A stretch of 64,000 nucleotides of DNA, taken from Thalia democratica (Eukaryota). The stretch spans positions 61,442,001 through 61,506,000 of the forward strand of contig OZ241827.1 of NCBI GenBank assembly GCA_965202585.1, in the 5' to 3' direction. Below the pieces are notes generated by a model that saw only the letters and a program-made list of their open reading frames with translations, had not been told where the DNA came from and did no database searches. Positions 1 to 40,837 of this stretch are shown here, in pieces (within the stretch, counting starts at the first letter, position 1; the number at the start of each line of letters is the position of its first letter). Both the position numbers and the translations under genes were made by a program.

Positions 1-64
1 GAAGTTCTTACCTGCAGGAAAGATGGCACCTGGAGTCATAAAAGCGCTCCTGAATGCAGACAGA
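1..64 (+). CDS. CCP exon A1 (3' part, class P')
   Basis: EVLTCRKDGTWSHKSAPECRQ then GT; full copy at 50807-51004. Confidence 0.85.
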
Positions 65-3000
65 GTTTGCTTTTTGTTGATAATTTTTGATAAAAACTAC
101 GTTAAATGCTATAAACAGCCAGTTTATAGTTTGAAAATTGTACAAGTTATATCTTTAAAATTTACTTCAAAGAGTTTTTAAAATCAAGTAGTATATAAGT
201 TTGTTTATTCAAGAAAAGTATGATATTTTTGGTACCTACTCTTTGTTACAGTAAGATATTTGAAAATCACTCACAGAAAACAATTTTTTGTATTTCGCTA
301 AAAAATTTAAAAGTTCAAGTTCTGATACTGAACTTGCTTTAAACATTTTATACTTATTAATTTCTAACAGCATGTTCGGTAATTCCACTCGTGAACAACA
401 GCAGACGAGTAGTAGAGTCCTATGAAAGTTCCGACAACGGGATTATTCAGAGCATAGTAATTAGGTATGAATGTCTTCGCGGGCATGTTTTTAATCGAAA
501 AGAAGACGCTGGTAAAATTTTTCCTTGCACATCAAAGTACGGGTGGAGCTTTACAAGATTACCGCAGTGCGTTAAAGGTTTAATTATTGCAGTTTAAAAA
601 GAAATCGTTATAAAAATAATTTTTAGAGTTTAACGTGGATCAATTTTATTTTAAGTTTAATTTGTAATCAGAATTATCGTTACTAAAAGCCTGAAACTAA
701 AACTCATTAAAAAATATAATAAAAACAACGTAGGTAAAACTACAATCTTTTTTTAGTCTTATTTGACAACTTTAGAAACGAATTTTGCTTATTTTTGACA
801 TTGTTTATGATGTATAAGTATTAATACTCTGATGAACGTTATCCAACTTAAGTAGAAAACAATTTATAATTTATATTTCAATAGGTTACATGGCTATAAG
901 TCAGAAAACTAAAAAGAGTCATTTTTTCCATACATACAACAAAGTTATAATTTAACAGCTATTAATTGTTTTACTTACTTTTAGAAGTTAAAACTTAGCT
1001 GCCTAAACAAACAATAAAAAATTTATTCAAACATATCAAAACCTACCATTCTTCAAGTTAAATGTGCATGGATAACAGTTTCGTTATTTTAAACAGAGTG
1101 TGACAAAATACCGTCTGTCGAAAACAGTGCTCCTACAAACGCGCCATCGCTGCTCATTCCCGGTACAGTCGTGTCTCATAAATGCTTTGAAAACTTTGTG
1201 CAAACGGCAGGCAATATAACTTGCGGATCAGACGGAAAATGGAGACCTACTATGGAGTGCATTCCCGGTAATTTGGCTTGAAATAATATTTTCAGTAAAT
1301 AAGAGTTTTTTATACCTAATCATTATTTGTAGTATAAATTAAAATTTGACCGTTCAAATTCTTTAAACGATTTTTAAATGGCCATAACTCAAAAAGTAAC
1401 ACACATTTAAAAAATTAAAATCTTATTTTAGATCTAATTAACACCTAAAAATACTTTTTTTAATTTTGCAAAATCTTTCATATTTTTTGAAATATCACTA
1501 AAACAAGTTTTAAAATATAGTAACTTTAATTAAATTTTTAAATTCTTTTTAAAAATCCTTTTTTTTTCAGTTTACTTTTTACTATTACAATCTTATAAAT
1601 AAGACATACAATTGTTCTTTTGATTTATTTTAATGTATATATTTTTATGAGTTGTGGCCTCCTTAACATTTTTTAAGAATTTAATTGTCGGAATTGGAAT
1701 AGTCATGTAACAAAGTTGAACATACTTTTATTTGCTGCTTAACAGTATAAGTTTTTATACGTTTTAATCCTTATCAAAATCAAAAAAGTACTTCGTCAAA
1801 GTGTTTTAATTCAATAGAAAAAAAACACAGATTGTGGGTCTTCACCAACCTTTCCACAAACTTATAAGTTGGTAAACTACCGCAACATCAGTAAAGGTAT
1901 CAGCTTAGAAACTTCAGTTGAGTACTTTTGTGAGGAAGACTGTTACATGATGCCTGATCCTAGGGTAACCTCACAAATATTCACGTGCGATACTGGTGGA
2001 CCTTGGGACATTGCTTCAATTAATTGTTTAAAACGTGAGACCATAAAGCTTTTAGACCACAGTTTGTAAATATTCTGTAAAAAATTTGAAACTTTTGAAT
2101 AGTTTGTTTTATGTAGTCAAACACAGTTTACACTCGTTCACAAAGTAAACCTGTATGAATTTATACTCATCTGTATATCAGAAAGTAGTGCGTAAAATAA
2201 TCAGTGCTTGATCTTAAGACTGCTAAAAGTTTGATCTTATAGTTTATAACTGATATGATTAATTTTTTTATTGGTTAAGAGTGCACTTTATAAGAATAGT
2301 CAAATCGTTTTTTACTTTATGAATACCAAATGAAGATCATAAAATATTAAAAAAAAAATTTAATTTTTGCATTAGAATTCTACAAACTTTTTACAGAGTG
2401 CCCGAAAGTAGAAATTTCTAGCAAAGTCATCATGGAGATTTTAAATGTTATCCACGACGATGTATCTTACTTAACCGGCACCGTTTTGAAATTCACATGC
2501 CCAGCTGGATACGTCATTGATAACCCTGAACTTTCTCAGGCAACGTGCACCGACCAAGGTTCATGGAACTCAACTTTTCCCACTTGTCACATAGGTAAGT
2601 TTAACTTAAAAACGACTCAAAAACGTGCATGCAAAAGATATAAATTCCAACTTATAACAGAAATTCGTATAATACCGTGTGTTATCTCTTTTAGCTTGTT
2701 CGAAACTGGAAGCCATACCAAACGGAAAACTAGTCAGTCATAGCCAAAAACGTAAAGGATTCTACTTGGATGGTGATGTTTTTAATTATGCTTGTAATGA
2801 TGGCTACATTTTTCACTTTGGAGCATCAGATGATTACATTTACAAGTGTTTAGATGATGGGAATTACGACAACATTATAACACCTCTCTGCATTACAAGT
2901 GAACACATTTTATATGAATATAAACTTTGTAATACATAGAAAATTGATGTACAAGTTATACTTTCAAGTTATCATTATTATTATTTTATTTGTTCTGAAA

Positions 3001-6000
3001 GCAAATTTTATTTGAGGTTCCGCAACAAACTTGGTAGCTTTTTCTACGTACGGAAACACTCTAGATTATTTATTGTAAAATATTAGAATATTAAGATGTT
3101 ATTATTAAAAAAATGCTATTAAACTATTATATTTATGTGCTTTACAACCAAACTTATTTATTATGAAATGTGTGTTATAACTTATATTAACCTTACTTTA
3201 ATTTAATTAAAAAAAAAAAACATTTTTTAGATTTCTAAAAACTATTTTTAACTTTAAAATGTTACTCATGAATAAAATTGTTTGGTGTATGTAAATTAGA
3301 CAGTTTATTTTAAACCTCAAGATAATTTTTTAAATAAAATACTACGTAAAACTGTGTTAAATATAAGAAATCGGAATTTGTTGTTTACCCTGTATTTTAT
3401 GGTTTGCTTAAATGTTATCTAACACGTTTTGATGCCTACTTATGTTGCTAGCTTTTCTTATAAGTTCCTTGAAACACAAGATGTTGAGTAGTTACATAAA
3501 CTATTTAACTTTATCTTATTCTAGTTATTTTCGTACCGCAATAAAACATCTGACTGAAGCACATTATACTTTGACAAAACTAGCTTAATCTTACAAAGTA
3601 AGATTTCATTTGCACCATAACTTTGTCTAACAACTATTTTTCTTTTGCTTAATACACGTCTAATATTTGTAGGATGTCCTTCACCTCCTGAAGAAGAATA
3701 TGTAAGTTGGAAAATAGAGTTCAGCTACAGAGAAGACGAGTTTTGGAGTTATACTGAAGTAACCTACAAGTGTAAACCTTCTCATAGTTTTCTGTGGGGT
3801 GAAAATAAAATGCGAATTTGTGGAATAAATGGAACTTGGGACTTTCAAAATGCTCCCAAATGTGCTCCAAGTAAATTAGAATTAAAAATATTAAGAAAAT
3901 GTAGCTGATACTCTAAAGGCAAATGTATTTTTTCTTTAATAGTAACGAGTAATGATACAAGTAAAAAAGAACAAAAATAATCGTAACTTATTGTATTTCT
4001 TAAGTTTTCTTTTTTATCTCCTTATAACTCTCATTTTAACTTACATAGATTACTCTAATAAGTATTATTAAGTGTAGAATTAGATTTTTTTTTAATATAT
4101 CATTTTTATAAACATTTAATATTTGATCTAATTGTTATTATAATCAATATTTTAGAAGATTGAATTTTAGTCTTACATATTGAAGTTTCAAAAAGTTCTT
4201 AGTTAAGGCATACAATCAACTAAATACATTTCAACAAAAATAAATCTAAACTTATACTTTCTTCATATTAATACTAAACTAACTAATTTTGACATCTTTA
4301 ACAAAAAACAAAAAATAATAATTAATATCCATTAAAAAAAATGAACAATTAAAGTTATATATTTTCGAGAATTCGGAATAATAGTTAACAAGATAATAAC
4401 TATCAGAGGTATGATAATTTATAACTATATCATGTTTTGTTTTTGTAAGTATTTCACAATCATAAAAGTTTAGCTTTAATATGGAGAATTCTTATTAAAC
4501 ATCGCTTTTTAAAAAAAACATTCTAAAAATGAAACAGATCTTTTAAAATAGATACAACCAGTTTCGAGTTACAGTTTAAACCAAAATCTGTGTTATCCCA
4601 ATAATTTAAATAACCTGTAATCTAAAGTTAAGATTAAACGATCAAGTTAACAGCTTATTTATTAAAAAAAATATGTAACAGTCTACTGTGCACAGCTTAA
4701 AAAGTTATCAGATATTCAATTAAATAATAAATTAAAGACAAAAAACATTTTCTTTTTTTTAGTCTGTGAAGTTCCTCCATATGTTCCAGACGCGAACGTA
4801 ACTACAATTAAAACCGTAAGGCTTGAAAATGGAGAAGTTGAAGAAAGCACAATTGATTATCACTGTAATCCTGACTATTATCTGGCTAACGAAACTGCAA
4901 ATGTTCGATTTCAGTGCAGTGTAGGAGCATTTTGGACGCCTAAAAAGCTTATAAGTTGTGTTAAAAGTAAGTTTAATAAGCTTATTGACTTAAACCACTA
5001 AATACAGATTACAAATGTTAACTTAATATTTTAATATATTTTGTCACTTATTGTTTACTTGTGCAAACTTAAATAAGAGAAAAATAAGCCGTACTTACAA
5101 TAAAGACGTAACTTTTAAAAACTCAGAGTGCAATCGAATACCAACCATAACAAATGCACACTTTTACAATATTACTTACCTAAATCAAAGAAGAGACGTT
5201 TATTTAAATAGAACAGAAGTTGAATACAAATGCATTGAAAACTTTGTGCCAAAAAAGTCTAAAATGACTTGCATTGAAAATGGTGAATGGACCCCAACTT
5301 TTCAGTGTTATCCAGGTTTTTAATTTTGTATCTAATAAAAGTTTCAGTTTAAAATAATCATCTAAGTTATCTTATTATCAATACACAATTTTAGATTAGT
5401 TATTTAATACAATTATATAACATCTAAAGTTTTGTAAATTCAATTTAAACTAATTTGTGGAAAATTTATAACTTTTAAGTTTTTACAGATTGTGGTCCAT
5501 CACAAGATATACCAAACACAGTGAAAAGTTTGGATAGGATAGGTAACGTCGATTCAAATACTACAGTTGAGCAAATTGTATCTTACACTTGCAAACATCC
5601 GTACTTTTTACTACCACAGTCTGTAGATACCACTCGTAATTGTGTAGATGGATCCTGGGTCTACAACGACTTTAAGTGTTTACAAAGTTAGTTAAAACAG
5701 ATTGGTAATAATGTAAACTTGGTTCTTTCTTGGATCTTTGCGTTTTTAACAAAAGTGAAATGAACAATTTCAGAGTAGTTTTTAGATACTAGTTTGCTAA
5801 AAGTTTGTTACAAAAATTAACTTATTTTATCTGTTTGTGCAATAGTAGTTATATTTACTCTTACATATACTCTTTTATATACTCTTTAAAGAGTGTAATA
5901 TCTTCTTTTTAATTTAAGCATGAACATGCTTGAATCACATATATTTGTTGCTACTTTTTAATGAACTTTCTTTAAATACATCAACTAAGTAAATATAGTT

Positions 6001-9000
6001 ATATAATATATATTTTATCTTAAAATGTGTCTTTATTATTACTTTTTAAATACAGAATGCCAGAAAATTATATTAAGAGACAAACTAAAGTTTGAAATTA
6101 TCCAGAAAGTAAGCTATGAGGATAGAACACTTTTTGAAGGTTCGATAATCGAGTTTAGTTGTGAAGACAACTTTATTCTTAGTGATTCAGATAAAACACA
6201 CGCTGAATGTGTTAATAATGGAGAATGGAACGTAACTGCACCTTACTGTGTAAGAGGTAGGCACTTTTTAAAGTATTATCTGGAAAAACAATCTAACTAA
6301 GTTTTAAAAAGTGGTTGTTTGTTAGTATTTCATATTTTAGTTCATCTATTATTCTTATATACTAAAGCTTTAGGTTCACTTGATATTAGTCTTGTTTTAA
6401 GTTTTTTGAAAATTTAGATTGTGGATTTCCTAAAAATATTACAAACGGTTCTTTTGAAGTCAACTTGTACTCAATTATTAACAACACTGAAAATGGTTCA
6501 GTTATGAAAGTACCTCAAAAAGTCACATACTACTGTAATAATGGCCACGTCATTTCACCACATTCAACAGCAGTTTTAAACTGCGATGAAAACAGCGGAA
6601 GTTTAAATGCTCCAAAATGTGTGACAGGTTTGTTTTTGCCTTTATACTGTTCTCTAAAACTCATTAAGTATAGATCTAATAACTAAGAACAAAATCTCTC
6701 ATTAGTTTTTAACTTGTTTTGTAACCAACAATTTATTAATCAATAGAAACTTTTTTTTTCTGCTAATGAATATAGTTTAGTACCTTTATTTATACTTTAT
6801 TTTTGATGAAGGTGATTTAAACGATCTCAATAAAGATAACCACTACTTTAGACTGCGGTGCACCACCAAAGAAAGACAATATGACGTATTCAGAAGACAG
6901 TGAAAAACCTTACTATTTAAACGGAAGCGTTGTGACTTACTACTGCGTAAACGGGTACGAAATACTCCCCACGGATCAAGACGAAATAGTTTGCGCAGAT
7001 GGATCTTGGCAGGGAGTTGTAGGAAACTGTTATTCAGGTAGCGCGTTACGCATGTATGCATGGTATATGACTTGACAAGCATTTGCGGTATACAGACTGT
7101 ATGATTATAATTTTTTAAAGGTGTAAGTTTAAGAAAACTTTTTAAGTTTTTTGTTAGTCATAGAGGTACTAGTTTGCAAAATCAAAAAGTAAACAATAAA
7201 AGGCTTATAAAAGCAATACAAAGTGTAATTTATTATTTATAAATTAAATTTACTGCTTTTATTTACAAAAAAACTTGATCTTTACTTGAGTGAACAATTT
7301 TGAAAAACTTCATTCTATTTGCTTTTTCAGTTTTAATTATTAAGTACTTGTTCAACCATTAAAAATATGAAACAATACTTCTATTGTTTTCAGTTCACCG
7401 CTGCATAGAAGTTCCGTCCGTAACAAACGCCGAATACGAAGTAACGAAATGGATACACGACGGATCGTTGCTGCCAGGTACCGAAGTCAGGTACACCTGC
7501 GGGAACAACCTGACCATGATACCTGAAAATTTTGTGGGCAGGATTTGCGAGGAGTTCGGAACGTGGAGGAGTGTGCCTGCTACGGCTGTTCCAATGTGTG
7601 GAAAAAGTAAAAATATGTTGCGATTTAGCTTAGGAGTAACACCGTTTGTGTTAAAATTTGTTAAGAAAAAGCTGTCTCAGATTTATTCAAAACATTTAAA
7701 TGTAGATCTTTCGTTTATTTAAACTCTTAAAATCATTTATATAATATTATTTTGTTTTTAATATTTTTCTTAATGGTTTAAAACATTAATAATATTGTAG
7801 AACTTTATAAGCTGTCCCAACTATTTTCTAAACCCCTTGTACCTGACATTTTATTTAAGAGAAATTAGTAGTCGTCTTTTTATAAAAAATCAAAACAACT
7901 TTTTAGTTGATCTACGCAGCATATAAAATACACTAAAGCTGTTCTTTGCTTTAACAATGTCATTGGCTGTAAAAAATAGTCAGACATGAGAATTTAAAAA
8001 ACTTTGTTGGTATATTATTTTTCAAAACTAAGTTTGTATCGAATTTTTAAGCTTTTGTTTTTCAACAACTTTTGTTTATAGTGTGCCATAAACCTGATAA
8101 CATACCCTACGGAGAACTAGTGAGTATTGACCAGAAACGTAAAGGTTTTTACTTGGAAGGTGATATTTTAAGTTATACTTGTATTGATGGCTATATATTT
8201 CATAATGGAACAGCAAGTGATTATGTTTTCAAGTGTTTAAACAACGGATCTTACAACAACAATAGAAAACCTCTCTGCATCACAAGTTACTAAGCCTTTA
8301 TATAAATACGAATTTTTAATACTTACACCTTATCTGCTATTACTTTTATATTTTTAAGATTTATTAATTATTCTAAAATACTAATTTATTTCAATCAAAT
8401 ATTAAGGTGGAATTAGGGTTGTTTTTTATAGAATAAACTTTAGTAATAAGCTTTTTTAACATAAAATGCAAAAATTTGATTTGTAAGAAAAAATAGCAAT
8501 GATATTAATTTTGTCATAAAAAATGTCTTTACTATACAAATAACTTCACAAACAATCGCAACTAAATCAAAAGTAGTTTTTTTTAATTTAAAGTAAAGTA
8601 GTTTATTGTCCTTGAATCAATATTCTACTTTCAAGTTAAATATAAATTATAATAAACACTGTTTACAAATACTTAAAAATCAAGGCATCTTAAGAAGCAA
8701 ACTTAGTTTCTGAAGGCAGTTTGATTGTACTACGTTTGACTTCAAACGTTGGTAAAACAGCGTTTATCCTTATACTAAAAAAAATGTTCTGTTTTAGTTC
8801 TGTAAAACTATGCACTTTAAAACCTAGATTTTGTAATTTTATCATAAAAGTATAAATACTAAACTTAATCGTTCATTTTAAGTGTATTATTTTCTAAATT
8901 ACTATTGTCTTTTAATACTATAAACTTTATACAGTAATTAAGTAAATCCATTTATAGATTTAGTTTTGTGAATGGTTACTAGATTAACTTGCTAGAAACT

Positions 9001-27000: not shown

Positions 27001-30000
27001 CTAAAAACCTATCTCCCACTTCATTTTTCAAGCAATCTTCTTCAAATTTTAGAAACTCTTCCTTACATTACAAGAAAAAAATTTAATTTATGAATTTAAA
27101 TAATAAAAATAAATAAAAATTTTATAAAAAAAAATGAAAAAAAAAGTCTTTTCTTTTTCAAAAAATAAAAATTTTACTACAAATTTATAAAATCATAAGT
27201 AATGTTTTCAGCTATTGTACAAAGATTAAACTGTTAAAGTTTGAAGAAAATTGCTTGAAAAATGTATAAGGAGATAGATTTTAAACAAAGTAGCCTTTTT
27301 TCGCTGTTTTAGTTTTCCCTTCCCATAGGGAACCTATTATGCAGCCCGACTTTAACTGATCATATCTCAAAAAATAATTCGAACTTTTTAAAACAACAAA
27401 AAGCATCTTAAAGCTTAAAACAAAATCTATAAAATAAGATCAACTTCTAAAAAACATGGCTTACCCCCCCTATGGCCTTAAACTACAAATAAATAGTCAA
27501 CTAAGTATAACAACTAATACCTCAAAATATTTTTCTCTGTGCAATTTCTAAATAATGTTTAATATCTATTTTAAATCAACAAAAAAGAATTGTATTAAAC
27601 TCAAAATAATTCATACTTTTGGTTTGTTGCCGCTTTTAATATACTATTTTAATCTTATGTATAATAATATTAAATCTTCAGTATTAAAATTGAAAGTTTT
27701 AAATTTTTAATTTTTGTAGAAGAAATCTAAAGCGCTAGTTTTTTTTTTAACTTCTACATTTGTACCTATATTACAATATAAAACTGTAAAAATAAATCTT
27801 AAAAAATGAAGAAAATTTATAATATAAACAAAATTAAAAATCAAAATTTCATACCACTTGAGTTATCCTGAGTGTGTGGAAAGATTACTAAAGATACTAA
27901 ATGTTTTTGATACAAAACAAAATGTTTAAAAGATAAATTTTTTAAGGTTAACTTTTTCAATGCTTTTAAAAATTCACAGAAATATAACTTTTCACTTATC
28001 TTAAAATAAATTTTTATAAGATCTTTACAGAATAGTATTTTTTTAAATTAGATTTAAAACTAAATAAATTTAAATTTAAAATTAATCTATTTTGTCTTTT
28101 AGACTAAAAATTGATTGTAAAAATTTTGTTTAACAAGTTGCTTAATTTTTTATTTAATTTATTTACAAGGCTACAATGTTTCTCCCCTAAGGGATCTTCA
28201 GGCCTGTAAAATAAGATAAACATAATACGATGGACAACTTAAGAAAATACAATAATGCAAAAAATTATTATTGAATTCAAATTAAAATTAAAAATGTATA
28301 GCGCTATTACTAGATAATTAGTTAACAAAATTAAAAGTTTTATAACAATGAAAAAGACTTTTTTTTAAAATTTTAAATATGATTTATACTTACAATAGAT
28401 GATTTGTTCTATATAGATTTGGATTTAGCTTATAACAAAACAAAATGGCGCTTAACAAATGAGGGTACAAGTAATAACAAAAACAGAACTAAGTGATAGA
28501 AAAATTTATACGCTAAGTTTTAAAATAAAATTTCCTAAAGTGCGGGCAGGTGTAGAAGAGCTCTTGTCTTTTGTTTAAAATTCGTTTCTTATTAGCAAGT
28601 GCTATTTCTATCTTTTCCAAATTGCAAGTCTTACAGATTTTACCTATATTCTTCATTTCCCTGATCTTGTGCATTTTGCTCCATCTTAAATCGTAGCTGG
28701 TGTTATTGTTTTTTAGTCTCCAAATGTACTTGGAAAGCTCTGTTCCCTTGTTGTTTTCATTCTTAATATCACTAATGTGCGCATACCATCTCTTTTTGAA
28801 CTGGCTTCCTGTGGATCCTATGTATTCTTTTGTTTCGTTCTGACTGGTATAAGTTTAACAAGTTGCTATTAATTAATTCATGATGAAACTAAAGAAATTT
28901 TAAAATAACTTGCTACAATTTTTTTTTTTTTTTAACTTTCTGGCTGATAGAATAACAAAGTTTGATTTGTTTCTTATTTTAATAAAAAAAGAAACTAGTT
29001 TTAATAAAAATTTCAAGTTTAGATAATTTAAACAATACTTTTTGTATAGTAAAATTTAAACTGTAATCACAGTATGAACTGTTTGTTTGTTATTTATTTT
29101 AATTTATTATTTTATTTTTTTCTGTTTTTTGTTATTTTCTTTTAAATTATGTTGTTAATATTTTTTATTCTTATCATCAACTTATATTTATTTTATTAGC
29201 AGTTGTTTATTGCTATTTTTACTTCAATTTGTTTATTCTTGAATCATTATCACTATAAAACAGATTTAGCTCTATGGTTTGTTAACAAAATATTAGCATT
29301 TGTCCTTGTAAAAAAATCTGTCATAAGGTTATACTACTGCGGTGCACTAACTAGTTGCGTACTGTTTGAGTCTAAATTCTTATGAAGTTAATGAAGTTAT
29401 AAAATTTTTCCTTATGGAGTTTTTCATCAACATTAATGCACATTTGAAATTACGCATCGAATCAGTATACTGGGTAATTTCCCTAACTTGTCACTAATTG
29501 GTATTCGAAATTTCATTTTACTTTTCAAATACTAGAAATACATAGTTGAAAAAAGGCAAATTAAGCAGAAAAATAAACTATAAAGGATAAAAATACTGCA
29601 TTTTTTTTTTACTTTACTTTTTTTTTTTTTGGTGACACACATGCGCCAGCGTTCCTCCCCACGCTACGCCCCTGGTCACAAGTACTTGTTAATGGAAAAG
29701 TAATTGAATGACATATAATTCTATCTAGACTAAAATTGTTGCAAACTAAGAGATCAAGTATGTTTCCAATTTTATGAGTTGGACTCTCGATTACCTAGGT
29801 TAAAAAACTATCCGTGCAAAAATTTTAAAAACACTAATGGAATTCATTATAGTCTGTGGTAAGAATTGTCCAATCCATGTTAGGCAGATTAAAGTCCCCA
29901 AAAACAAAAAAGAGTAGTCATTTGGAAAAAGTACTTTAATTTTATTTATATTTTTAACAGTCAGTGCACATTTTGCAGACAGTTGGGGATGGTAGACACC

Positions 30001-33000
30001 AAAAAATCCCAGTTTTATCTTTTTTCAATTACTTCTATATTTATGTATTGAAAATTATGCTGTTAATAGACATTGAATCTCTTTAAACTTTTAACACTTT
30101 AAGGAATTTTCTGTAAAGGATACAACACCTTCACCCCTACTTTTCCTACCGTTACAGACTATATTATAGTTAGAAGGACAGACTTTGGCATCGTTGACTT
30201 TAAGAGTCAACCATGTTTCACTAAGAAAAAACAAATCAGTATTATTCGTGTACAAATAGCTCTCTAAAAAATCAACTTTATTTAAAACAGATCTTATACT
30301 AGTGTACACAATTCTTAAATGTTTACTATTACAATTATTATAATTATCAAAGAAAACTTACTATTGAATTTATCAGATAGTTTTAAATGTTTAGAAATAT
30401 TTAGAACTATTGACTTACAGTTTTTGTTACTAATCCAAGAGCTTCTAGGAGCTTAAACGAAACGAATGTCTTGTTGATTCCATAATTTTGTTGTTCCTGA
30501 TTACGTATTTCTCGTTTAGATTAATCTGACGTGCTTTATTTTAACTTCTTATCTCAAGGTTCTGAATACTCTTGCTCTAAGATGATTTTGTCAGGGTTGA
30601 TATAAACATTTGTTTCAATTTCATCGTTCATAACTTTCAGATTTACCAGCTTTAATAGTCTGTGTTTAGAGGCTACATCATTAAATTTGATTAAGATCGG
30701 TCTTTTTAGAGTTGTAAACAATGAATGCTTTGAACAATAATCTACAATTTACAAATTTAAAATTTTATAATGAAAAAAACAGAAATAAATAGCTTAATGG
30801 TTGTAAGTTTAATTAAAGTTAACTTCAACTAACTCTACTGTTTACAACATAAATAATCAATCAAAAGATTTTTATGATAACAAATCTACAATTTTTTTTT
30901 ACACAGCACAAGTTTAAAATGCTTTCGTGATAATCTTTTCTCAGTAAACTTCAAAAACAATTTTTCATTTAAATGTTGGCTTATCTCTAAAGCAAAATTA
31001 CGCAAAACATTTATCTTACCAAATAAAAAAACAAAGTTTTATTTTTTATTGTTAACAACAGATCAGTAATGGTAGACTTTTTTCAGATTTTTAAGAAACT
31101 TTTACTTTTCATTTTATGTATGCTATTTACAGATTGTGGTCCATCACAAGATATACCAAACACAGTAAAAAGTGTGGATAAGGTAGCTAACGTCGATTCA
31201 GATACAATAGTTGAGCAAATTGTATCTTACACTTGCATACATCCGTACTTTTTACTACCAGAGGCTGTAGATACCACTCGTAATTGTGTAAACGGATCGT
31301 GGGTCTACAACGACTTTCAGTGTTTACAAAGTTAGTTAAAATAGGATGTCAATAATTTAAACTCGGTTTTTTTTAGATATTTTAATTTCTTATTATTTCA
31401 TAAACTGATTTAAGATGGAGCGGATAAGCTTAATACACTTTATTAAAAAGCAGTGTTGTATTTGTTTTAACAACTAATTTATAACGATATACTTTAAAAT
31501 TTTATTATTTGCTTTACCTTGTATAGAATTGTTTAAAGCTGAATAATTTTTTTTTTATTTAAACAAAATATTTTCAAATAAGTTTAAAAAAGTAATTAGC
31601 ATGAAACTTGAAATGATACCGATTTTGGAAACGTTTTAGAATGCAGCGAAATACCGAACGTAGACAATACTGAGTCTCACAGTATTACTAAACCGGTAAG
31701 TAGTGGTGGTAGTTATTTTAGTGGCACTGAACTGGATTACAAATGTGATGAAAATTTCGCGCCAAAAGTTACGAAATTGACTTGCGGTGAAGATGGTGAA
31801 TGGACCCCAGCTTTTCAGTGTTATCCAGGTTTTCATTTTGATTAAAAAATATTTTTGCTTTTCTTTCTTTAGTTTATATTTTTGACAACATATTTTTTTA
31901 CAAATTAGCTAATATATGTTATTTTTAAATGCCTTGTAATACAGTCTCAGACCTTACTCTTGTTTTATTTTACAAGTCTAAGGTTGTGTTAAAATACTTA
32001 CATGCATGTTTTGTTTTATAGTTAGTGTAGAAAAGAACGACTCGGTCAAGAAATAATTTTAAACAAGTATTGTTCGTTTAAAACTTTACCATCTCTTAAA
32101 AAAGCTTTAACATATCTTTATCATATCTTTTTCTAAAAATACTCCTTATGCTAAAGTATACCTTCAGACTGTGGAAAATCGCCGAACATACCTGGCACTA
32201 TTAAAAATGTACCCGAGCAAGTGGTTTTGTCTACAATTACACTAGAGTTCGTTGCTGAGTACACTTGCAAAGAAAATCACACTTTAACTCCAGAAGCATC
32301 AAACACTACTTACAAATGCATAGAAGGCCCGGCTTGGACAAGCTACAGCAGCTTTCAGTGTTTAAGAGGTATATCATAATAATAAAAAAGTTAAACTATA
32401 AAACACAATTATTTTTTTTTCAGAGTGCGAAAAACCTCCCTCTCTGAATATTTCAAGAGCAAGCTCGAGAATAGAATGGATTTCGGATGAAGGCTTGTAC
32501 TTGCAAGGCACCAAAGTGCACTACACTTGCAGCGACGGTTTTCTGATGAGCCCACCCGGTTTTGATGGGATTGTATGCGACAAAACTGGATCATGGGTGA
32601 CACCTGGACTTGAATTTTCAGGAGATCATCTGTGCATAAGAAGTTAGAATTAATTTCACTGTGCTATCAAAAAACTATTAAAATTCAAAGTTGTTTTTGT
32701 TGATTGGAAATTTTAACAAGAAAATAAACTTTTTGGATAAAAATATTGATATATTAAAAATTAATCAGACTTAGATCTTCACGTACGCGCCTCGAGTTTT
32801 AGTGTAACAGAGGACGTGGCTGGAGAATACAAACAGACTTCTCGTTGCGAAGTCACGGTGAACGAAAACGAATCCTTTTGTGCTGATTCAAATAACAGAG
32901 GGTTCAACGTTATCATTTTGAATCCGTTCGAAAAATACCTCATGTATAAGTATGAAATTTTTGACACTTATACTGTTGACTTGGAAAATACTTCTGTCCG

Positions 33001-36000
33001 TGGTCAGGTATCAATTGAAAACTTTACTATTATGCCTTGTTTTTGATACTTATCACAACGTTTTTTAAGTTTTGTAGTGCTTTTATGTTTTATAAGTTGT
33101 AAACATTTTAATTTTTTTTGTTTTTTTTCTAACACTTGTTTATAAATTAATTAAAGTTGAAATATATTTTTTTTACCTTTTACACTTGGAAGTACTAAAA
33201 GAATTAAACGGTTAAATATTTAGTTATAATCACATATTAATTTAATTTTAGCCAAAATTTTTATTTGTTGATGTTCAAAGTTTAATAATGATTTATTATT
33301 ATTTTAATTTATAGCAATTTCGAATCAGTATTAACATTTACTTATTAATGTTATACTCTATTTTTTTCTAAAGCTAGTTTTAACACATATCTTTTTTGTT
33401 ACAGCTTGGAAGTATGTCTGATTATATAAGAAATAATGCTAAAGATTTTGAAGTGGTTATTATAGGTGTGGTTGATGCTATAGACTGGGGAGACTTTACA
33501 GCGAATCAAATGGACGAAGTAAATTACCTGATAGACAATTTAGGCGCATTACAAGATCGTTGTACTGGCTTTAGGTTTTATGGAGGTTTCTTTTTGTATT
33601 TTTATTTCGTTTATAGTTTCTTTTTTTGTTATAAACGACCTGATAGCACAATTGGTATAAATTTTATAAAGTAGTTTATTTTACTTTACAGGTGTACATT
33701 TAAACTGAAGTATACTTTTATAAATCAATCTACCCAAATTAAATTTAGTTTAGCAAACTGCAATCTGTTAAAGATAGTTTCTTAGAACAGCAATGTGTTA
33801 TATTGTATTTTAAGTTTAAAATATGTTGTTTATACAATAGTAAATAAGAAAAAGAGCTAACTTGCTAACTATTTAGTTTTGCAACATTATGTTTTTTTTT
33901 TTTATTTACACTAAACTCAACGAAACTATGACTGCCGGCAAACAATTATTTTAGTTTAATCTGATCATTGATCTATAAAATACACCCGTTGCTCATAAAA
34001 GGTGCCGATCCTCGGCTTAGTTCGACACCCAACCTTGTAGGGTTGCCTTTTTGATTGTTGTTATAATGAGTTTTTTAAACAGTAATTTTAGTAAAATAGT
34101 TACAGTCATTGATTTGTTTTATTAAACACATAAAAACCGTATAAATGCTTTTGAGTCTTAAACATACTATGATGAAACCATTAACACTATGTCATTTAAG
34201 ACTCCAAAAAACTTTAAATTATTATTTTCTAAATTAGTATATAGTTTTAATTGTAATAAATGTACTTGTAGGTAAAAGTTGTACTGTTTAATGTGAAGCG
34301 TTTTGATAGTTTATGTTTATTATTTATAACTTAGTCTAAATCTTCTATGAAGATCAACTGTAAGTAAATAGAATTAACTTTTATTTTTAATCCGAAGAAC
34401 GTCATCACAAGGCTTGAAATATGTTGTATATAACAAGTTTATTTCAGTCTTAATATAAATTTTACTAAACTATTAAGCTTTTTAGAATTCGTGTCACTGT
34501 CTGACCGTAAACATTTTATTCAAAATCAAATATCACAACCGTTACAACTGTTAAATCAATACAACCTAAACCTAAAAATTTAAATAAATTAGTTGAAGTT
34601 ACTTTTCATAGATATTTAAAAATGCACAGTTGAAAAAAAGTTTCAAAAACAACAACGGACAAAAATCAGACTTAAAAGTATCACCAGACATTATTTTCAT
34701 CGACTTTTTAATTGGAAATAATGATTTAATAGTTTAAAGCTGTCAATCGTGATTCAAACTAAGAATAATATCAAAAAGTAATTAAGGGTTTTTCATATTT
34801 TAGTTTTGTGCTTAATGTTTAAATGATTTAATTTATTCGTTTTTAGTAAAGCGTTTTTAATTATTTATTTTTTGCACTTTTAATAAATAGTTAAAAGACT
34901 TTCAAAAATAGTTTGGATGATTCCTTAGGTTTTGTTTAATAATTTCAACATAAAACTACTTTCAATTTATACATCAAGTATTGGTTTTTGTGAAATCAAG
35001 TCGTTTATTATTAAAAATGATTTTTTTTTTACAAACTCATAGTTAATGCTAAATTTTTGCATCCTGAACTGATTGTTTTTGATTTTGTGTGTAACTAATA
35101 TGTTTTACCACAGAAAGGCAATCATACGCCCTAGTGAGTCACAAACGTCCAGAAAATGGTCTCCGCGCCGAATGGACAAGGTGTACCAACCTAGCAGATA
35201 TTGCTCCGTACTCCAGTACACATGATCTAAACTTTAAGCCAATAGAAAGTTTACTTTTTTAATTGCATATTATTATTTTTCACTTGCCTAATATGTATAC
35301 TTTAGTTTCTACTAACTACATAACTTAATTACTTTTTATGTAAGCTGAGTTTAACGTTTAAAAATTTACTAATAGTAGTAAATATACTTACCAGTAATAA
35401 TTATGCGTTTGCTACCAATATTGTTATCAAATAATAACTAATAAAGAAAAAAAAAGCTTATATTAAAAATAAAATGCAAATTACGTAGTAAAGTCCAACT
35501 TTAACAAAAACATATTTAATTAATTTGAAATATTTTCTCATTTCTATTTCTAATGATTTGTTTGGAAGCAGTTCACAACACAACTGTTGTATCAGGTTAA
35601 CAACTAAATAATTTCGAGAAGCGGTTTAATATTTTTGTAAAATATCTTTTACAAACTTTCTATTCTACCAAGTCTTTACTTCACTTTTTCATAGCTTTAT
35701 AGAGTTTTTTCAATCACATTAAGGGCATAGAAGGGGAGGGGGTCAAACATTTTTTTTACAAAAACTAATGTTGGCTCCTGTTTTAAAGCTTAGAATATAC
35801 GATACATTTTATAGAAAATTAAACAAAAAAATTTCAGTTAACTATTGAAACATAAAAATTTTTGTAAAAATTTTCCGATACAACTGTATCGAAGCAAAAA
35901 TTTTCAAGGTTATGTAAGCTGATTCTTCATAATTTCTTCGCAATTTTGAAAAATTTACTAAAAATCTATTTCCTCCTTCACTTTCAAAATAATTTAATTC

Positions 36001-38651
36001 AAATTTTTAGAAAAAAAAAACAAATTTTATTTTATTGTGAAAAAGTCTTAAAACAGCTGCTCAAAAACTGTTGAAGGATATAGATTTTTAGTAAGTTAGT
36101 CTATTTTCATCTTTTAATTTCCGCCTCTCAGAAAGAGCCTATTGAACGCTCTAACTTTGATCGCTTATATCTAAAAACTACTTTGAATTTTAACAAGCGG
36201 TAAAAAGTAACAACTAGCTTATCTAGTTATGTAAAAAATAAGACTAAATTTAAAAAAGTGTTTCTCAACCCTCTTATGCCATCAATTTATGCGATAAAAA
36301 ACTTTACTTGACTTTTTCTTTAAACATTTTTTCCTCCAATTAACAGCTTTAGCCTTTTTTTTATCAAAGTTATTATCTAACTTGTCTAAACTTTTTAAAT
36401 AATATTGCCGTGTCTGTTTTCAGCAACTTTTACTTTGTAGCGTGTGGAGACCCTAAAGAAATAGAAAAGGGTCGTTGGACCCCTAGTAGCTCTGTTGAAT
36501 TATGGGATGAATACAGAGGAAGCATCACTGTTGTCCAGCAAGTGCAGTACTCTTGCGATCCGAGGTACAAGATTGAAGAGGGATCAGTTTCTTATGTAAA
36601 CTGCGATCACAACACCAACTCTTTTACTCCTGACCCGCCATCGTGTGTTTATATAGGTGAAACAAACGTTTTTGAGCTTGAAATTTTGTTTAGCTAACAC
36701 ACTTTCTTCTCAATATGTACTTGTGAAAAAGGTAGATTTTGAAATTAAATGTAGTGTAATGTTTGAAATATAGTAAATGAAAGTTTAAGTTTAGAAAGCT
36801 GTAAACTTACCGCTTTATAGTATTTTTTTTGAGTCTGACACAGTTTACAATCAAATAAATGGTCAAGTATTGCACTTCTGTAGATTTTTGTAAATACGAT
36901 CTAGAATTTTTCTTAAGTTGCTTGAAATACCTTTATTTAATAGGTTAAAAACTCTATAACTTTTATATTTTTCAATTAAAAAACAATATATCACATACAA
37001 CTACTATTTTTTATGTAACATTAATTTTACCAAATTTTCAAAACTAACCGCAGAATGTCCATCCTCACCAATAAGTGAAGACGATCTTAAACGGTACAAT
37101 TTGCTTAAAAAAGTCTTGAGCAGGGATCCAATCTACAACTCGGCTTTAATTTTGGAGTACGCTTGCAAGGAAAGCTACTCGATGCTGTATGAGGGCGATT
37201 TCGTTTATTATTGTCAGGAAGACGGAAGTTGGAATACCTCAAACATACCTCAATGTGTCAAAGGTAATTTCTAATCATTACAAGTTGCTATTGTAACACA
37301 AAGCTATAAAATGTATCTGAAAAAAATTAAACGCAATCTAGCTAACTTTTAGGGTTTTTAAGTTTTTTTTAATAATACAAAACATCAAAAAACCTATGTC
37401 TTTTTCGAAAAACTACGTTTAAGGCTACTTTCAACATTTATGTCCTTAACAGAATGTCCTGAACCACCTAAAGTAGATGAATACGAAGCGGAGTATGAAT
37501 ACAGCTTTGAAAACAACCGGTACTTCTTAAACACCACTGTCAACTACACTTCTTGCAAGGCCGACAATTACGAACTGTTTCCTGGAGACGTCAGAGACGG
37601 AAAAAGTCTTTTGACATGCGGCAGGACTGGCCAGTGGAGCCCGGAAACAGCTCCAGTCTGCGGTCTAAGTGAGTTTTTTTGATACAAAAATAAAGCAAAA
37701 TTTCAAAGTTATTTATAATACAAAAATAGATATAAAAATAATAATTTTCTTTGACTCCATTTTTTTTTTGATCCTTTCAATTTTTTAACCTCTAACCAAC
37801 TTTCTGTCACTTTCGCTAGTATTAACTGTTGATGTGTTGTAACAGGTTGCGACGTGGACCCTGCAGATGCGGTGGTTCCATATAGCTTTGTTAAACGGGT
37901 TCTTGAAAACGTTGACGACGGCAGCGAAGGAAACTGGGTGAGGCGCAAAAGGACGTTTTACTGCCTATTAAATTATCATATTGACGATGTTAATAACAGA
38001 GAGTTCACTTGCGAAACTGGAAGACCTTGGACGCCGTATCCGTTTCCAAAATGCCTTGCAGGTTGTATAATTGCAGCTAAATTTAAAGCCTTTTTTTTGT
38101 CATTGGTAATTTATAACTAGTTTTATGTAAAAACTTATTGATAAAAGTACTCTTATGTTTCAAACTTATGAGAACATTTAAAAAGCTATGTACAAATAAC
38201 CTTTATATATTTTACTGAATTTATAAAACTGCTACATTTCGAGTTTTGTAATGTTAAATAATTTTCTTGTTTTTTAAGAAATGTGGGAAAAAGATCATAG
38301 TTTTGTATTTACACAGAAAACAGTAAAGCAAAATGTTTTCTTTTTGTACAATCTTTTGAAAACATAACATTAGTATATAAAAGTAATATATATGAAGATA
38401 TTAACCAGCACAAAATAATTTTTTGTTTTTTCACAGCATGCAGAAGCGATTTTTCCGAATTTGAGAATATTGCCAGTAAGGAGTTTTCAAATGTAAACAA
38501 CTTCGCCGCGGGCCGAACACACTCTGATTTCTTTGTTGGAACTACGGTCAAGTACAGTTGTAGTGCTGGCTTTGTAGCTGCGAACGACGGCGAATCGACT
38601 TGCTCGGAACATGACGGTTGGCAACCGCCTGTTACTTGCAATGAGCTGTGA
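1..38651 (+). CDS. Gene A (5'-truncated): giant, apparently secreted multi-CCP/Sushi protein; 43 CCP modules plus 2 ILEI/PANDER-like domains in window
   Basis: 49 AG/GT-bounded exons (listed below) join into one 9498-nt frame ending TCNEL* (TGA 38649-38651). Each CCP exon has the C..C..C.xxG.W..C pattern. Confidence 0.85.
371..577 (+). CDS. CCP exon A2 (V-like)
   Basis: AG/GT, phase 1-1, CSVIPLV...LPQCVK. Confidence 0.9.
1097..1267 (+). CDS. CCP exon A3 (short I-like)
   Basis: AG/GT, phase 1-1, CDKIPSV...GKWRPTMECIP. Confidence 0.9.
1831..2034 (+). CDS. CCP exon A4 (S-like)
   Basis: AG/GT, phase 1-1, CGSSPTF...GPWDIASINCLK. Confidence 0.9.
2397..2594 (+). CDS. CCP exon A5 (class T)
   Basis: AG/GT, phase 1-1, CPKVEIS...GSWNSTFPTCHI. 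Confidence 0.92.
2695..2898 (+). CDS. CCP exon A6 (class L)
   Basis: AG/GT, phase 1-1, CSKLEAIPNG...PLCIT. Confidence 0.92.
3673..3870 (+). CDS. CCP exon A7 (class P)
   Basis: AG/GT, phase 1-1, CPSPPEE...GTWDFQNAPKCAP. Confidence 0.92.
4763..4966 (+). CDS. CCP exon A8 (class V)
   Basis: AG/GT, phase 1-1, CEVPPYV...GAFWTPKKLISCVK. Confidence 0.92.
5127..5315 (+). CDS. CCP exon A9 (class I)
   Basis: AG/GT, phase 1-1, CNRIPTI...GEWTPTFQCYP. Confidence 0.92.
5489..5686 (+). CDS. CCP exon A10 (class S)
   Basis: AG/GT, phase 1-1, CGPSQDI...GSWVYNDFKCLQ. Confidence 0.92.
6056..6256 (+). CDS. CCP exon A11 (class E)
   Basis: AG/GT, phase 1-1, CQKIILR...GEWNVTAPYCVR. Confidence 0.92.
6418..6627 (+). 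CDS. CCP exon A12 (class G)
   Basis: AG/GT, phase 1-1, CGFPKNITNG...APKCVT; lacks the canonical Trp. Confidence 0.88.
6852..7037 (+). CDS. CCP exon A13
   Basis: AG/GT, phase 1-1, CGAPPKK...GSWQGVVGNCYS. Confidence 0.92.
7394..7606 (+). CDS. CCP exon A14
   Basis: AG/GT, phase 1-1, HRCIEVPSV...GTW...PMCGK. Confidence 0.92.
8082..8285 (+). CDS. CCP exon A15 (class L)
   Basis: AG/GT, phase 1-1, CHKPDNIPYG...PLCIT. Confidence 0.92.
9189..9386 (+). CDS. CCP exon A16 (class P)
   Basis: AG/GT, phase 1-1, CPSPPTG...APKCIP. Confidence 0.92.
9491..9694 (+). CDS. CCP exon A17 (class L)
   Basis: AG/GT, phase 1-1, CRKLDDILNG...PLCIT. Confidence 0.92.
9972..11254. mobile_element. Non-autonomous hAT-like DNA transposon with 6-bp TSD
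   Basis: Termini CAGGGTTCGTGCGCA and TGCGCACACAAACCCTG; subterminal ATCAGGCT(T/A)AAT repeats; flanks cattct/tattct (cattct/cattct in the second copy). Confidence 0.65.
10981..11150 (+). mobile_element. TTAA-GGGCATA (Kolobok-like) MITE end nested in the hAT-like element
   Basis: TTAAGGGCATAGGGG... is homologous to element ends at 27481 and 36280. Confidence 0.55.
11740..11937 (+). CDS. CCP exon A18 (class P)
   Basis: AAG/GT, phase 1-1, CPSPPVGD...APKCAP. Confidence 0.88.
12203..12406 (+). CDS. CCP exon A19 (class V)
   Basis: AAG/GT, phase 1-1, CEVPPYV...ISCIK. Confidence 0.9.
12682..12870 (+). CDS. CCP exon A20 (class I, contains RGD)
   Basis: AG/GT, phase 1-1, CNEIITI...KRGDVY...IQCYP. 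Confidence 0.92.
13068..13265 (+). CDS. CCP exon A21 (class S)
   Basis: AG/GT, phase 1-1, CGSSPSI...FDCLK. Confidence 0.92.
13473..13673 (+). CDS. CCP exon A22 (class E)
   Basis: AG/GT, phase 1-1, CKQVELS...APYCER. Confidence 0.92.
13786..13974 (+). CDS. CCP exon A23 (class I)
   Basis: AG/GT, phase 1-1, CKEIPKI...FECYP. Confidence 0.92.
14870..15070 (+). CDS. CCP exon A24 (class S)
   Basis: AG/GT, phase 1-1, CGSSPNI...FECLN. Confidence 0.92.
15213..15401 (+). CDS. CCP exon A25 (class I)
   Basis: AG/GT, phase 1-1, CNEVPTI...FECYP; downstream intron homologous to that after A23. Confidence 0.92.
16578..16775 (+). CDS. CCP exon A26 (class S)
   Basis: AG/GT, phase 1-1, CGPSPTI...FECLK. Confidence 0.92.
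17180..17383 (+). CDS. CCP exon A27 (class L)
   Basis: AG/GT, phase 1-1, CSKLDDIPNG...PLCIT. Confidence 0.92.
18062..18259 (+). CDS. CCP exon A28 (class P)
   Basis: AG/GT, phase 1-1, CPSPPVGD...APECAP. Confidence 0.92.
18555..18758 (+). CDS. CCP exon A29 (class V)
   Basis: AG/GT, phase 1-1, CEVPPYT...ISCIK. Confidence 0.92.
18922..19110 (+). CDS. CCP exon A30 (class I)
   Basis: AG/GT, phase 1-1, CDDIPTV...FQCYP. Confidence 0.92.
19375..19566 (+). CDS. CCP exon A31 (canonical, GC-rich)
   Basis: AG/GT, phase 1-1, CPYPPLE...GDWDRSTPPACTP. Confidence 0.93.
20853..21037 (+). CDS. ILEI/PANDER-like domain 1, exon a
   Basis: Phase 1-0; ALSAGYG...RGTGVAIINP...KRFDT resembles the ILEI S-x-G and RG-x-NV-x-x-IN...FDT motifs. 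Confidence 0.8.
21305..21473 (+). CDS. ILEI/PANDER-like domain 1, exon b
   Basis: Phase 0-1; LERMAAFIE...GDVIVMAVRG...IGVD. Confidence 0.75.
22095..22220 (+). CDS. ILEI/PANDER-like domain 1, exon c
   Basis: Phase 1-1; HHSWVVVTG (ILEI SW-x-x-V-G motif); donor g|gtgag. Confidence 0.78.
22628..22810 (+). CDS. CCP exon A32
   Basis: AG/GT, phase 1-1, CENPPPV...GWKHAVGCLR. Confidence 0.92.
22946..23140 (+). CDS. CCP exon A33
   Basis: AG/GT, phase 1-1, CADPPKG...SWPHTEAPTCLR. Confidence 0.92.
24686..24883 (+). CDS. CCP exon A34 (class S)
   Basis: AG/GT, phase 1-1, CGLSRAI...FECLS. Confidence 0.92.
26960..27481 (-). mobile_element. Kolobok-like/foldback MITE remnant inside the hAT element
   Basis: Ends CCCCCCCTATGGCCTTAA; internal inverted arms at about 27009-27052 and 27236-27279; homologous to 35719-36285. 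Confidence 0.55.
28162..28210 (-). ncRNA. Minimal hammerhead ribozyme of the Penelope-like element
   Basis: Minus strand: TTTACAGGC-CTGAAGA-TCCC ttag GGGA-GAAAC att GTA-GCCTTGTAAA; complete catalytic core plus stems I-III. Confidence 0.8.
28513..28854 (-). mobile_element. Penelope-like element 3' fragment (GIY-YIG endonuclease C-terminus)
   Basis: Open 114-codon frame: EYIGSTGSQFKKRWYAH...TELSKYIWRLK...CKTCNLEK...LNKRQEL...CPH*. Confidence 0.82.
31133..31330 (+). CDS. CCP exon A35 (class S)
   Basis: AG/GT, phase 1-1, CGPSQDI...FQCLQ. Confidence 0.92.
31640..31828 (+). CDS. CCP exon A36 (class I)
   Basis: AG/GT, phase 1-1, CSEIPNV...FQCYP. Confidence 0.92.
32168..32368 (+). CDS. CCP exon A37 (S-like)
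   Basis: AG/GT, phase 1-1, CGKSPNI...FQCLR. Confidence 0.9.
32424..32642 (+). CDS. CCP exon A38
   Basis: AG/GT, phase 1-1, CEKPPSL...GSW...HLCIR; preceded by a 55-nt intron. Confidence 0.9.
32769..33007 (+). CDS. ILEI/PANDER-like domain 2, exon a
   Basis: Phase 1-0; HVRASSF...NRGFNVIILNP...FDTY. Confidence 0.8.
33405..33585 (+). CDS. ILEI/PANDER-like domain 2, exon b
   Basis: Phase 0-1; MSDYIRN...VVIIGVVDA...LGAL. Confidence 0.75.
35114..35248 (+). CDS. ILEI/PANDER-like domain 2, exon c
   Basis: Phase 1-1; RQSYALVS...WTRCTN; not in the ORF track. Confidence 0.75.
35719..36285. mobile_element. Kolobok-like (TTAA-GG) foldback MITE
   Basis: Left end TTAAGGGCATAGAAGGGG; degenerate right end CCCTCTTATGCCATCAA; internal inverted segments. 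Confidence 0.55.
36441..36656 (+). CDS. CCP exon A39 (class G)
   Basis: AG/GT, phase 1-1, CGDPKEI...PPSCVY. Confidence 0.9.
37054..37263 (+). CDS. CCP exon A40
   Basis: AG/GT, phase 1-1, CPSSPIS...GSWNTSNIPQCVK. Confidence 0.9.
37453..37668 (+). CDS. CCP exon A41
   Basis: AG/GT, phase 1-1, CPEPPKV...GQWSPETAPVCGL. Confidence 0.92.
37846..38061 (+). CDS. CCP exon A42
   Basis: AG/GT, phase 1-1, CDVDPAD...PWTPYPFPKCLA. Confidence 0.88.
38437..38651 (+). CDS. Terminal CCP exon A43 with stop codon
   Basis: CRSDFSE...GWQPPVTCNEL-TGA; no phase-1 donor before the stop. Confidence 0.85.
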
Positions 38652-38723
38652 AAATAACCAGCACTTTGATCATTTGTTGTTTTTTTATTAATTTCAATTT
38701 CTCTTTACTTGTTTATAGGTTTT

Positions 38724-38784
38724 ATGGTATTAAACTGGACGCTTGTTCTTATTTATACTTTGTTTAAGTTTGCATTATATATAT
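38724..38784 (+). CDS. Candidate signal-peptide exon of gene B (alternative readings in findings)
   Basis: ATG 5 nt after a pyrimidine-tract TAG; MVLNWTLVLIYTLFKFALYI; phase-1 donor t|gtttgt. Confidence 0.35.
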
Positions 38785-39146
38785 GTTTGTTTACTTTTTG
38801 TTATTTTTTATTTGTTTTTCAGTTAAACTAATTTCAACATGCTCTTATTTTTATAAAAAAGCTACTACTTCTAACTTCATGCTTTTTCAGTCAGAATTTT
38901 GCGTACACATGGTCGGTAAACTTCGAATGCAGAATATTGCCATATAAAAACTGCAGACAACGATGTACTTTTGCTGCTCAGAGCATGCTTTTTTGAAAAC
39001 AGTAATAAGGAAACTCATTGTAGTAAAAGCTTTCTATTATGCTCTTAATTTTATAATTATTAATTACTAGTGCTTTACTGTAGTTATTATCACTTTCTTG
39101 CTATAAAACAGTTTTTTTATGTTGGTCAGTACACTTTTTTTTATAT

Positions 39147-39243
39147 CTGCGGCCCGCAGTAGACTATTTTTATACAGTGCGGGCGGCGAGCAACTTTTTC
39201 AAGGAAAATTGGCACGCGACTTTAAAAAGGTTTTCAATCCCTG
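39147..39243 (+). mobile_element. hAT (Charlie-like) MITE 3' fragment
   Basis: CTGCGGCCCGC...AAAAAGGTTTTCAATCCCTG resembles hAT subterminal and terminal motifs. Confidence 0.5.
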
Positions 39244-40391: not shown

Positions 40392-40443
40392 ATGCAGTGC
40401 TCATCTTGTGGTATAATATCCATAGTTTGGCAAACTTTAATAA
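40392..40443 (+). CDS. Alternative candidate first coding exon of gene B
   Basis: MQCSSCGIISIVWQTLI, phase-1 donor a|gttagt; weak hydrophobic core. Confidence 0.25.
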
Positions 40444-40645: not shown

Positions 40646-40837
40646 TTTGCAGTGAACCACCAAAACTTGAAAACGGGCATTATACTGGTCCAAATGTGCC
40701 CACAAACGGGTCTACATATAATTACGAGTGTAATCAGGGGTACTACATCAACCAAAACTCTTCTGATTTGTTGAGATGTTTGGAAAACGGAACTTACGAA
40801 TGGAATAAGGGATATCCGCCTGTTTGTTTAAAAATAA
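40646..40837 (+). CDS. CCP exon B1
   Basis: AG/GT, phase 1-1, CSEPPKLENG...PPVCLK. Confidence 0.9.

Follow-up and report, generated by a model that had tools for sequence, protein, structure and literature searches.

A giant CCP array with two embedded ILEI domains in Thalia democratica, a possible glycan-binding head on a long extracellular stalk

Introduction

CCP (sushi, SCR; PF00084) modules measure ~60 aa and carry four invariant Cys in a C1-C3, C2-C4 pattern, most often with a Trp between C3 and C4; in CCP genes, each module is typically encoded by one exon of symmetric phase 1-1. CR1 and factor H are beads-on-a-string arrays of these modules, of which factor H has 20 and the common CR1 allotype 30, and the number of modules varies between relatives. 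In CR1, a multi-module unit has been amplified in tandem to give the long homologous repeats, and the protein has a transmembrane (TM) segment; members of the RCA family (factor H, CR1, DAF, MCP, C4BP), which bind C3b or C4b and have cofactor or decay-accelerating activity, are essentially CCP-only in their extracellular part. Other very long extracellular proteins dominated by sushi modules, SVEP1/Polydom and CSMD1-3, are interrupted by further modules, their partners being CUB (CSMD) or other non-ILEI modules (SVEP1), and the selectins present a carbohydrate-binding module, a C-type lectin at the tip of the protein, on a CCP stalk with a TM anchor. Tunicates possess C3 and factor B as well as numerous CCP proteins, and some Oikopleura house proteins contain one or two CCPs.

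ILEI/PANDER (PF15711, GG) domains are known from FAM3A-D, small single-domain secreted proteins of ~230 aa with a signal peptide, from the stem of POMGnT1, which couples the domain to a glycosyltransferase, and from CEMIP and CEMIP2 (TMEM2), large extracellular proteins that act on the glycan hyaluronan, CEMIP having two GG domains and CEMIP2 carrying PF24606, PF10162 and PF24605 in addition. The POMGnT1 stem binds beta-linked GlcNAc via Arg129, Asp179 and Arg207, and this triad is conserved in the FAM3 proteins and in the sugar-binding Fam3L2 domain of C. elegans FAMP-1, whereas it is absent from the non-binding Fam3L1 domain of the same protein (PMC9802357).

Here we describe a locus in which these two well-known building blocks are joined, the pairing of CCP and ILEI being the new element. 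The locus lies in a stretch of 64,000 nucleotides of Thalia democratica DNA, all of which was analysed (the window). It resembles CR1 and factor H in its long CCP array and in the variation of module number between relatives, and CR1 also in the tandem amplification of a multi-module unit. However, it differs from both in its 61 modules and its two embedded ILEI domains, and from CR1 in having no TM segment, and sequence comparison yielded no evidence of orthology to either protein. The SVEP1 and CSMD proteins have lower CCP counts than this one, and none of the Oikopleura house proteins resembles a CCP + ILEI giant. The likeness to FAM3A-D and the POMGnT1 stem resides in the two 165-aa inserts, which align in order with PF15711-positive domains, and in the second of them, ILEI-2, which appears to keep the Arg/Asp/Arg GlcNAc-binding positions (PMC9802357); the first, ILEI-1, is like Fam3L1 of FAMP-1 in that triad residues, two of them, are missing. 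Unlike in FAM3, the domain occurs twice inside a CCP array, and unlike in CEMIP2, no further non-CCP family domain was found in the window. The arrangement is selectin-like in its principle, but with ILEI in place of the C-type lectin, in an internal position near the C-terminus and with no membrane anchor.

Results

The window is eukaryotic DNA of 25-31% G+C, and no N runs were seen across its whole length. All of the exons assigned in it encode CCP or ILEI modules, and their G+C content is 40.5%, as against 23.7% elsewhere in the window. Gene A (1-38651, plus strand) is truncated at its start, the window opening inside a CCP exon (1..64, with a GT donor after 64) that matches the gene B exon 50807-51004 and corresponds to module 19 of the composite protein described below. 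This is followed by 30 CCP exons detected with the CCP HMM (371..19566, modules 20-49, one phase 1-1 exon per module), the exons of ILEI-1, seven CCP exons (22628..32642, modules 50-56, including a 6.2-kb intron at 24884-31132), the exons of ILEI-2, and five unique CCP exons (36441..38651, modules 57-61), the last of which, the terminal exon 38437-38651, ends in ...VTCNEL and the TGA at 38649-38651. The spliced frame reads CCPx31 - ILEI - CCPx7 - ILEI - CCPx5, as in the first-pass annotation, and encodes 3,163 aa with a single terminal stop. An ATTAAA 78 nt past the stop (38729..38734, plus strand) is a candidate poly(A) signal of gene A. The C-terminal end ...TCNEL, encoded by 38637-38651, is in its last three residues loosely like an ER-retention ending; we take ...NEL to resemble the [DENQ]-E-L type, although the Cys at position -4 is off the usual pattern.

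Gene A contributes the 3' three quarters of the gene to the window, and a second copy, gene B, contributes the 5' part. Gene B begins at about 40646, after an intergenic spacer of ~2 kb (38652-40645), with 18 further N-terminal modules (40646-50524) and then the counterpart of the truncated module at the window start, which makes 19 plus-strand CCP exons in all (40646..51004, modules 1-19). From 50941 to the end of the window, gene B duplicates both the exons and the introns of window 1-12334 with a nucleotide identity of 94-96% (50941..63999, plus strand, running off the window end), and indels shift the A/B offset gradually from 50,940 to 51,746. The duplication is head-to-tail, measures ~51 kb and covers the whole giant gene, and it may represent a tandem paralogue or else a mis-join of haplotypes. 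Over 16 full-length A/B exon pairs, the copies are 98.1% identical, with dS 0.040, dN 0.0145 and dN/dS 0.36, which indicates that both are under purifying selection. Adding the 18 extra modules of gene B to gene A gives a composite, built from these two 94-96% identical tandem copies, of 61 CCPs and 4,409 aa in the order 49 CCP, ILEI, 7 CCP, ILEI, 5 CCP, in agreement with the earlier estimate of about 61 CCPs and about 4400 aa. Each of the two genes would encode a protein of this length. The composite protein is acidic (pI 4.8, ~490 kDa) and contains 71 N-x-S/T sequons.

Only eight G+C islands lie beyond the exon set, all of them small; those tested gave no Pfam match, and Rfam at the gathering threshold gave no match over the whole window. 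One island, without a Pfam match, occupies part of the intron that precedes exon 11740 and occurs in copy A (11351-11590) as well as in copy B (63091-63300), copy B being without ~80 nt of it (11358-11435). The 6.2-kb intron contains, on the minus strand at 30091-30721, two ORFs that resemble retroelement endonuclease fragments, again with no Pfam match. A 97-aa ORF between CCP 49 and ILEI-1 (20255-20545) was rejected as an exon, as it has the wrong phase for any nearby AG, is not conserved on the metagenome contig L009 and has no Pfam match.

The CCP modules were located with an HMM built from the window's own C..C..W..C segments, which gave 77 matches on the plus strand and none on the minus strand of the whole window. 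Each CCP exon is one module of 171 to 222 nt, and since the lengths of the complete internal exons are divisible by three in 73/73 cases, every CCP exon is of phase 1-1. The splice sites are equally regular: the AG acceptor lies 2 nt 5' of the C1 codon in 71/73 complete exons, and 8 nt 5' of it in one module type in both gene copies (7394 and 59122), and the GT donor follows C4 by 3 codons + 1 nt in 71/73 exons and by 4 codons in the other two. The four Cys are invariant in all 61 aligned distinct modules, the Trp being replaced by Tyr in some, and 55 of the 61 match PF00084 at E<=0.01; single exons reach 40.2 and 24.3 bits against a cut-off of 20.7. By family match, cysteine pattern and one-module phase 1-1 exons, these are CCP modules, and a run of such exons of this length is far beyond chance. 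Some introns between neighbouring CCP exons are very short, measuring 57 nt (45131-45187) and 55 nt (32369-32423); the former is stop-free and in frame, so that ORF 44923-45402 spans two modules.

When modules were clustered at >=42% identity, the types in the N-terminal array recurred in the order E-F-G-H-I-J(-K-L-M), the whole string being ..EFG.IJ.a.EFG.IJKa ABCD EFGHIJKLM EF EFGHIJ HI HI EFGH. [ILEI-1] ..IIHI. [ILEI-2] ..... A unit of ~6-9 modules, repeated in successive copies, makes up most of the N-terminal 49 modules, and the modules flanking and C-terminal to the ILEI domains are mostly unique.

Each of the two ILEI inserts, of ~165 aa, is encoded by three plus-strand exons, a, b and c, whose phases (1-0, 0-1, 1-1) together leave the reading frame intact. 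ILEI-1 comprises exon a (20853..21037, phase 1 to 0, RGTGVAIINP...FDT motif; orthologous exons on contigs L001, L009 and L010), exon b (21305..21473, phase 0 to 1) and exon c (22095..22220, phase 1-1, containing HHSWVVVTGRFPEH, between AG and GTGAGA; L001 73%, L009 61%). ILEI-2 comprises exon a (32775..33007, phase 1 to 0, RGFNVIILNP...FDTY motif; orthologues on L004, L005, L007 and L008), exon b (33405..33585, phase 0 to 1, containing VVIIGVVD) and exon c (35114..35248, phase 1-1, containing RQSYALVSHK; L004 89%). The earlier model of two exons per domain was superseded, since comparison of Tara Oceans contigs with the window exposed a conserved stretch in the presumed intron, with good splice sites, that revealed the third exons; with its exon c, the HMM match of ILEI-1 lengthens to position 120. 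The two inserts are homologous to each other, being 30% (exon a) and 26% (exon b) identical and sharing the intron position.

The profile of exon a gave 16 matches among 1.84 billion representative proteins. The long ones were P0005 (E 1.7e-9) and P0008 (E 7e-8), each of which scores ~450 bits on PF15711 with five or six ILEI repeats; P0008 is a Microcoleus protein that carries the NCBI name 'interleukin-like EMT inducer domain-containing protein'. The remaining matches were mostly single-exon ORFs, which, where traced, belong to short contigs of marine metagenomes, including several Tara Oceans contigs, and P0011 and P0015 were rejected as low-complexity or repeat false positives. By hhalign, the three exons aligned in order, exon a with ILEI columns 6-67 (probability 96%, E 2e-9), exon b with columns 72-94 and exon c with columns 118-138, exons b and c taken singly being weak matches (E ~0.003-0.004). 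A reverse HMM, for which P0005 and P0008 supplied the bona fide ILEI repeats, matched the spliced gene A protein at two sites, exactly the two inserts, with 25.6 bits (E 5.5e-10, model positions 3-120) and 16.6 bits (E 3.3e-7), and nowhere else in the window on either strand. PF15711 itself gave no match to single ILEI exons with or without flanking residues. Among PDB sequences, phmmer found no match for ILEI-1a and, for ILEI-2a, the POMGnT1 stem at a marginal E of 1.3 only; four of the six weak matches of the exon a family profile were the POMGnT1 stem and FAM3B, the matches to 5ggj and 2yop being weak (E 0.19-1.3), and the exon c profile gave no match. In the ESM Atlas, the 61-aa exon was poorly recognised and led to irrelevant bacterial DUF4249 clusters, a result that was discarded. 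The exon a profile, hhalign and the reverse HMM support the assignment of the inserts to the ILEI/PANDER (PF15711, GG) family, which upholds the ILEI/PANDER-like call of the first-pass annotation.

Among long proteins, the closest relatives of the ILEI exons are bacterial, with 5-6 ILEI repeats in tandem and the Microcoleus protein among them, and fusions of ILEI to further Pfam families occur in bacteria, in fungi and in other eukaryotes (for example PF00431 with PF00082, PF00656, PF00723 and PF03198). These bacterial matches had prompted the idea of horizontal transfer, which we did not adopt because their scores sum 5-6 repeats and cannot be matched by single-domain animal proteins.

We also compared the two domains at the sugar-binding positions. 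The first Arg, in the RG motif, is invariant in the alignment of all 13 window and metagenome sequences. In ILEI-2, the aligned triad reads R (RGFNV), D (VVD) and R (RQSY; RKSY in L004), and ILEI-2-type domains have VVD or VID at the Asp position. In ILEI-1, the R is kept, Gly (VRG) stands at the Asp position, and the third position of ILEI-1-type domains is His, Tyr or Thr (HHSW/YYSW/TTSW) in three species. By alignment, ILEI-2 appears to retain equivalents of Arg/Asp/Arg and ILEI-1 to lack two of the three.

Four metagenome contigs carry the CCP and ILEI exons in the order of the window, each on one strand: L009 (CCP, CCP, ILEI-1 a/b/c, CCP), L001 (ILEI-1 a/b/c, CCP), L004 (CCP, CCP, ILEI-2 a/b/c) and L005 (CCP, ILEI-2 a), with amino-acid identities to the window from ~40% to 91%. 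Since the contigs share this exon order, the CCP-ILEI-CCP joins are conserved among several planktonic relatives and are no assembly accident. Related plankton genomes preserve both the sequence and the order of the C-terminal part, which consists of the two ILEI domains and the unique CCPs. The N-terminal 49 modules follow a recurring multi-module unit, and the number of these modules varies between relatives. Module turnover was seen in L004, from a close relative, where positions 268-1552, compared with window 24686-32642, are without the three modules at 31133-32368 and without the 6.2-kb intron, and where 1228-1266 encodes a 13-residue remnant of one missing module. Furthermore, the module at 31133-31330 is 89% identical to the gene B module 57205-57402, which is itself 86% identical to its positional partner in gene A (5489-5686). 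The three missing modules and this likeness indicate that module number changes by unequal exchange; the L004 region shows module gain or loss that probably occurred through such exchange between I-type modules, and gene conversion between distant modules and between gene copies A and B is also suggested.

No 19-residue stretch of the composite protein exceeds a Kyte-Doolittle value of 1.22, so that the protein has no TM segment, as had been noted before, and no hydrophobic C-terminal tail was seen in it. The search for a signal-peptide exon gave weak candidates only, for example 39119-39158/39176; this low-confidence candidate for the first coding exon of gene B (39119..39176, plus strand, beginning MLVSTLFFISAAR...) has an AG 7 nt before the ATG and phase-1 GT donors after 39158 or 39176. 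From the missing TM segment, we infer that the protein is probably secreted or otherwise exported. The candidate start exon of gene B lies, together with the palindrome CTGCGGCCCGCAG, in a G+C island of the A-B spacer (39101-39310), and this island could represent a promoter or a first exon.

Finally, we searched elsewhere for the architecture, which the first-pass annotation had not recognised. In the literature consulted, no description was found of ILEI/FAM3/PANDER joined with sushi/CCP in one protein. PF00084 occurs in none of the best 120 ILEI proteins of 532-1694 aa from a 5.8-billion-protein collection, a set limited by length and word seeds, and the partner families listed among those 120 are PF00431, PF00082, PF00656, PF00723, PF03198 and the CEMIP2 set.

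Discussion

The sushi and ILEI modules are genuine, and the protein lies outside the RCA, FAM3, CEMIP and selectin families: two ILEI domains interrupt what would otherwise be a CCP-only extracellular part, and CCP exons adjoin the ILEI exons in phase, both in the window and on L001, L004, L005 and L009. The exon and module anatomy, taken alone, we hold with high confidence. Since all of the exons are frame-neutral, however, the open joined frame is no proof of one mRNA, and the exon run might represent several shorter CCP genes or a locus with heavy cassette-exon choice, in which case the 61-module protein would never be made. Indeed, any subset of these phase-symmetric exons would splice in frame, some introns are long (1.3-6.2 kb; 19567-20852 and 24884-31132), G+C islands lie outside the assigned exons, and exact spliced-junction patterns had no match in the metagenome contigs, where no cDNA was found. 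Nevertheless, we consider such a division quite unlikely, because the exons share a single strand and a single phase rule, none of the internal exons seen carries a stop or is of start type, the sole terminal exon is 38437-38651, the sole 2-kb CCP-free gap comes after its stop, and the joining of CCP to ILEI exons recurs in this order on short metagenome contigs. It is likewise unlikely that the tandem pair is an assembly error in which two haplotypes of a single locus, and hence of a single gene, appear as genes A and B. An identity of 94-96% that extends to the introns would fit this explanation, as would the dS, a value of ~0.04 being within marine tunicate heterozygosity; but the repeat is cleanly head-to-tail with a complete intergenic spacer, and the offset drifts by indels, as expected of diverged paralogues. 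A mis-join of this kind would leave the protein architecture unchanged.

As to function, the first-pass annotation had proposed an RCA-like complement regulator, a glycan-recognition scaffold or a structural/adhesive matrix protein. As a humoral or cell-associated complement regulator or receptor, the protein would bind C3b-like fragments through its CCPs and be targeted to surfaces by its ILEI domains, and its almost wholly CCP composition, with long-homologous-repeat organisation as in CR1, speaks for this role. However, no similarity was seen past the generic CCP fold, known regulators such as factor H are essentially CCP-only without ILEI, whereas two domains of ~165 aa are embedded here, and the A/B dN/dS of 0.36 carries no diversifying signal; we therefore judge this role improbable, its case being CCP content alone. 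The scaffold proposal receives some support from the ILEI-2 triad, and the matrix/adhesive idea is not separable from it on these data.

Our best reading, held with moderate confidence and resting on sequence analysis, is a long extracellular CCP stalk that bears a glycan-binding head. The protein would be exported and work as a beads-on-a-string stalk that, at ~3.6 nm per CCP, might reach ~200 nm, and that would be glycosylated, flexible and variable in length. The carbohydrate-binding head would be presented near the C-terminus of the stalk, with ILEI-2 binding glycans via its Arg/Asp/Arg positions, and ILEI-1, two of whose triad residues are lost, would probably be a structural or protein-binding partner. 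As no membrane anchor is present, the protein may be a soluble agglutinin, or else a tether or cross-linker in a matrix, mucus net or tunic; it would tether or cross-link glycans in the extracellular matrix, mucus net, tunic or body fluid. The ...CNEL ending, with its loose likeness to an ER-retention signal, speaks against this reading. More tentatively, and as a possibility that we hold with low confidence, ILEI-2, framed by unique CCPs, could be a working lectin of beta-GlcNAc/mannose type on an adjustable 200-nm stalk.

The locus illustrates exon-module gain and loss, with a repeat unit amplified and three modules absent in a relative. If ILEI-2 binds sugars, a FAM3/POMGnT1-type domain would be displayed as a lectin on a CCP stalk, which would add to the evidence for carbohydrate binding as a general activity of the poorly understood ILEI fold. 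If the lectin reading is true, the protein would found a class, new to pelagic tunicate biology, of scaffold or pattern-recognition proteins with an ILEI lectin, with a stalk length tuned by module gain and loss, and it could organise the cellulose/mucus feeding filter or the tunic, or agglutinate microbes.
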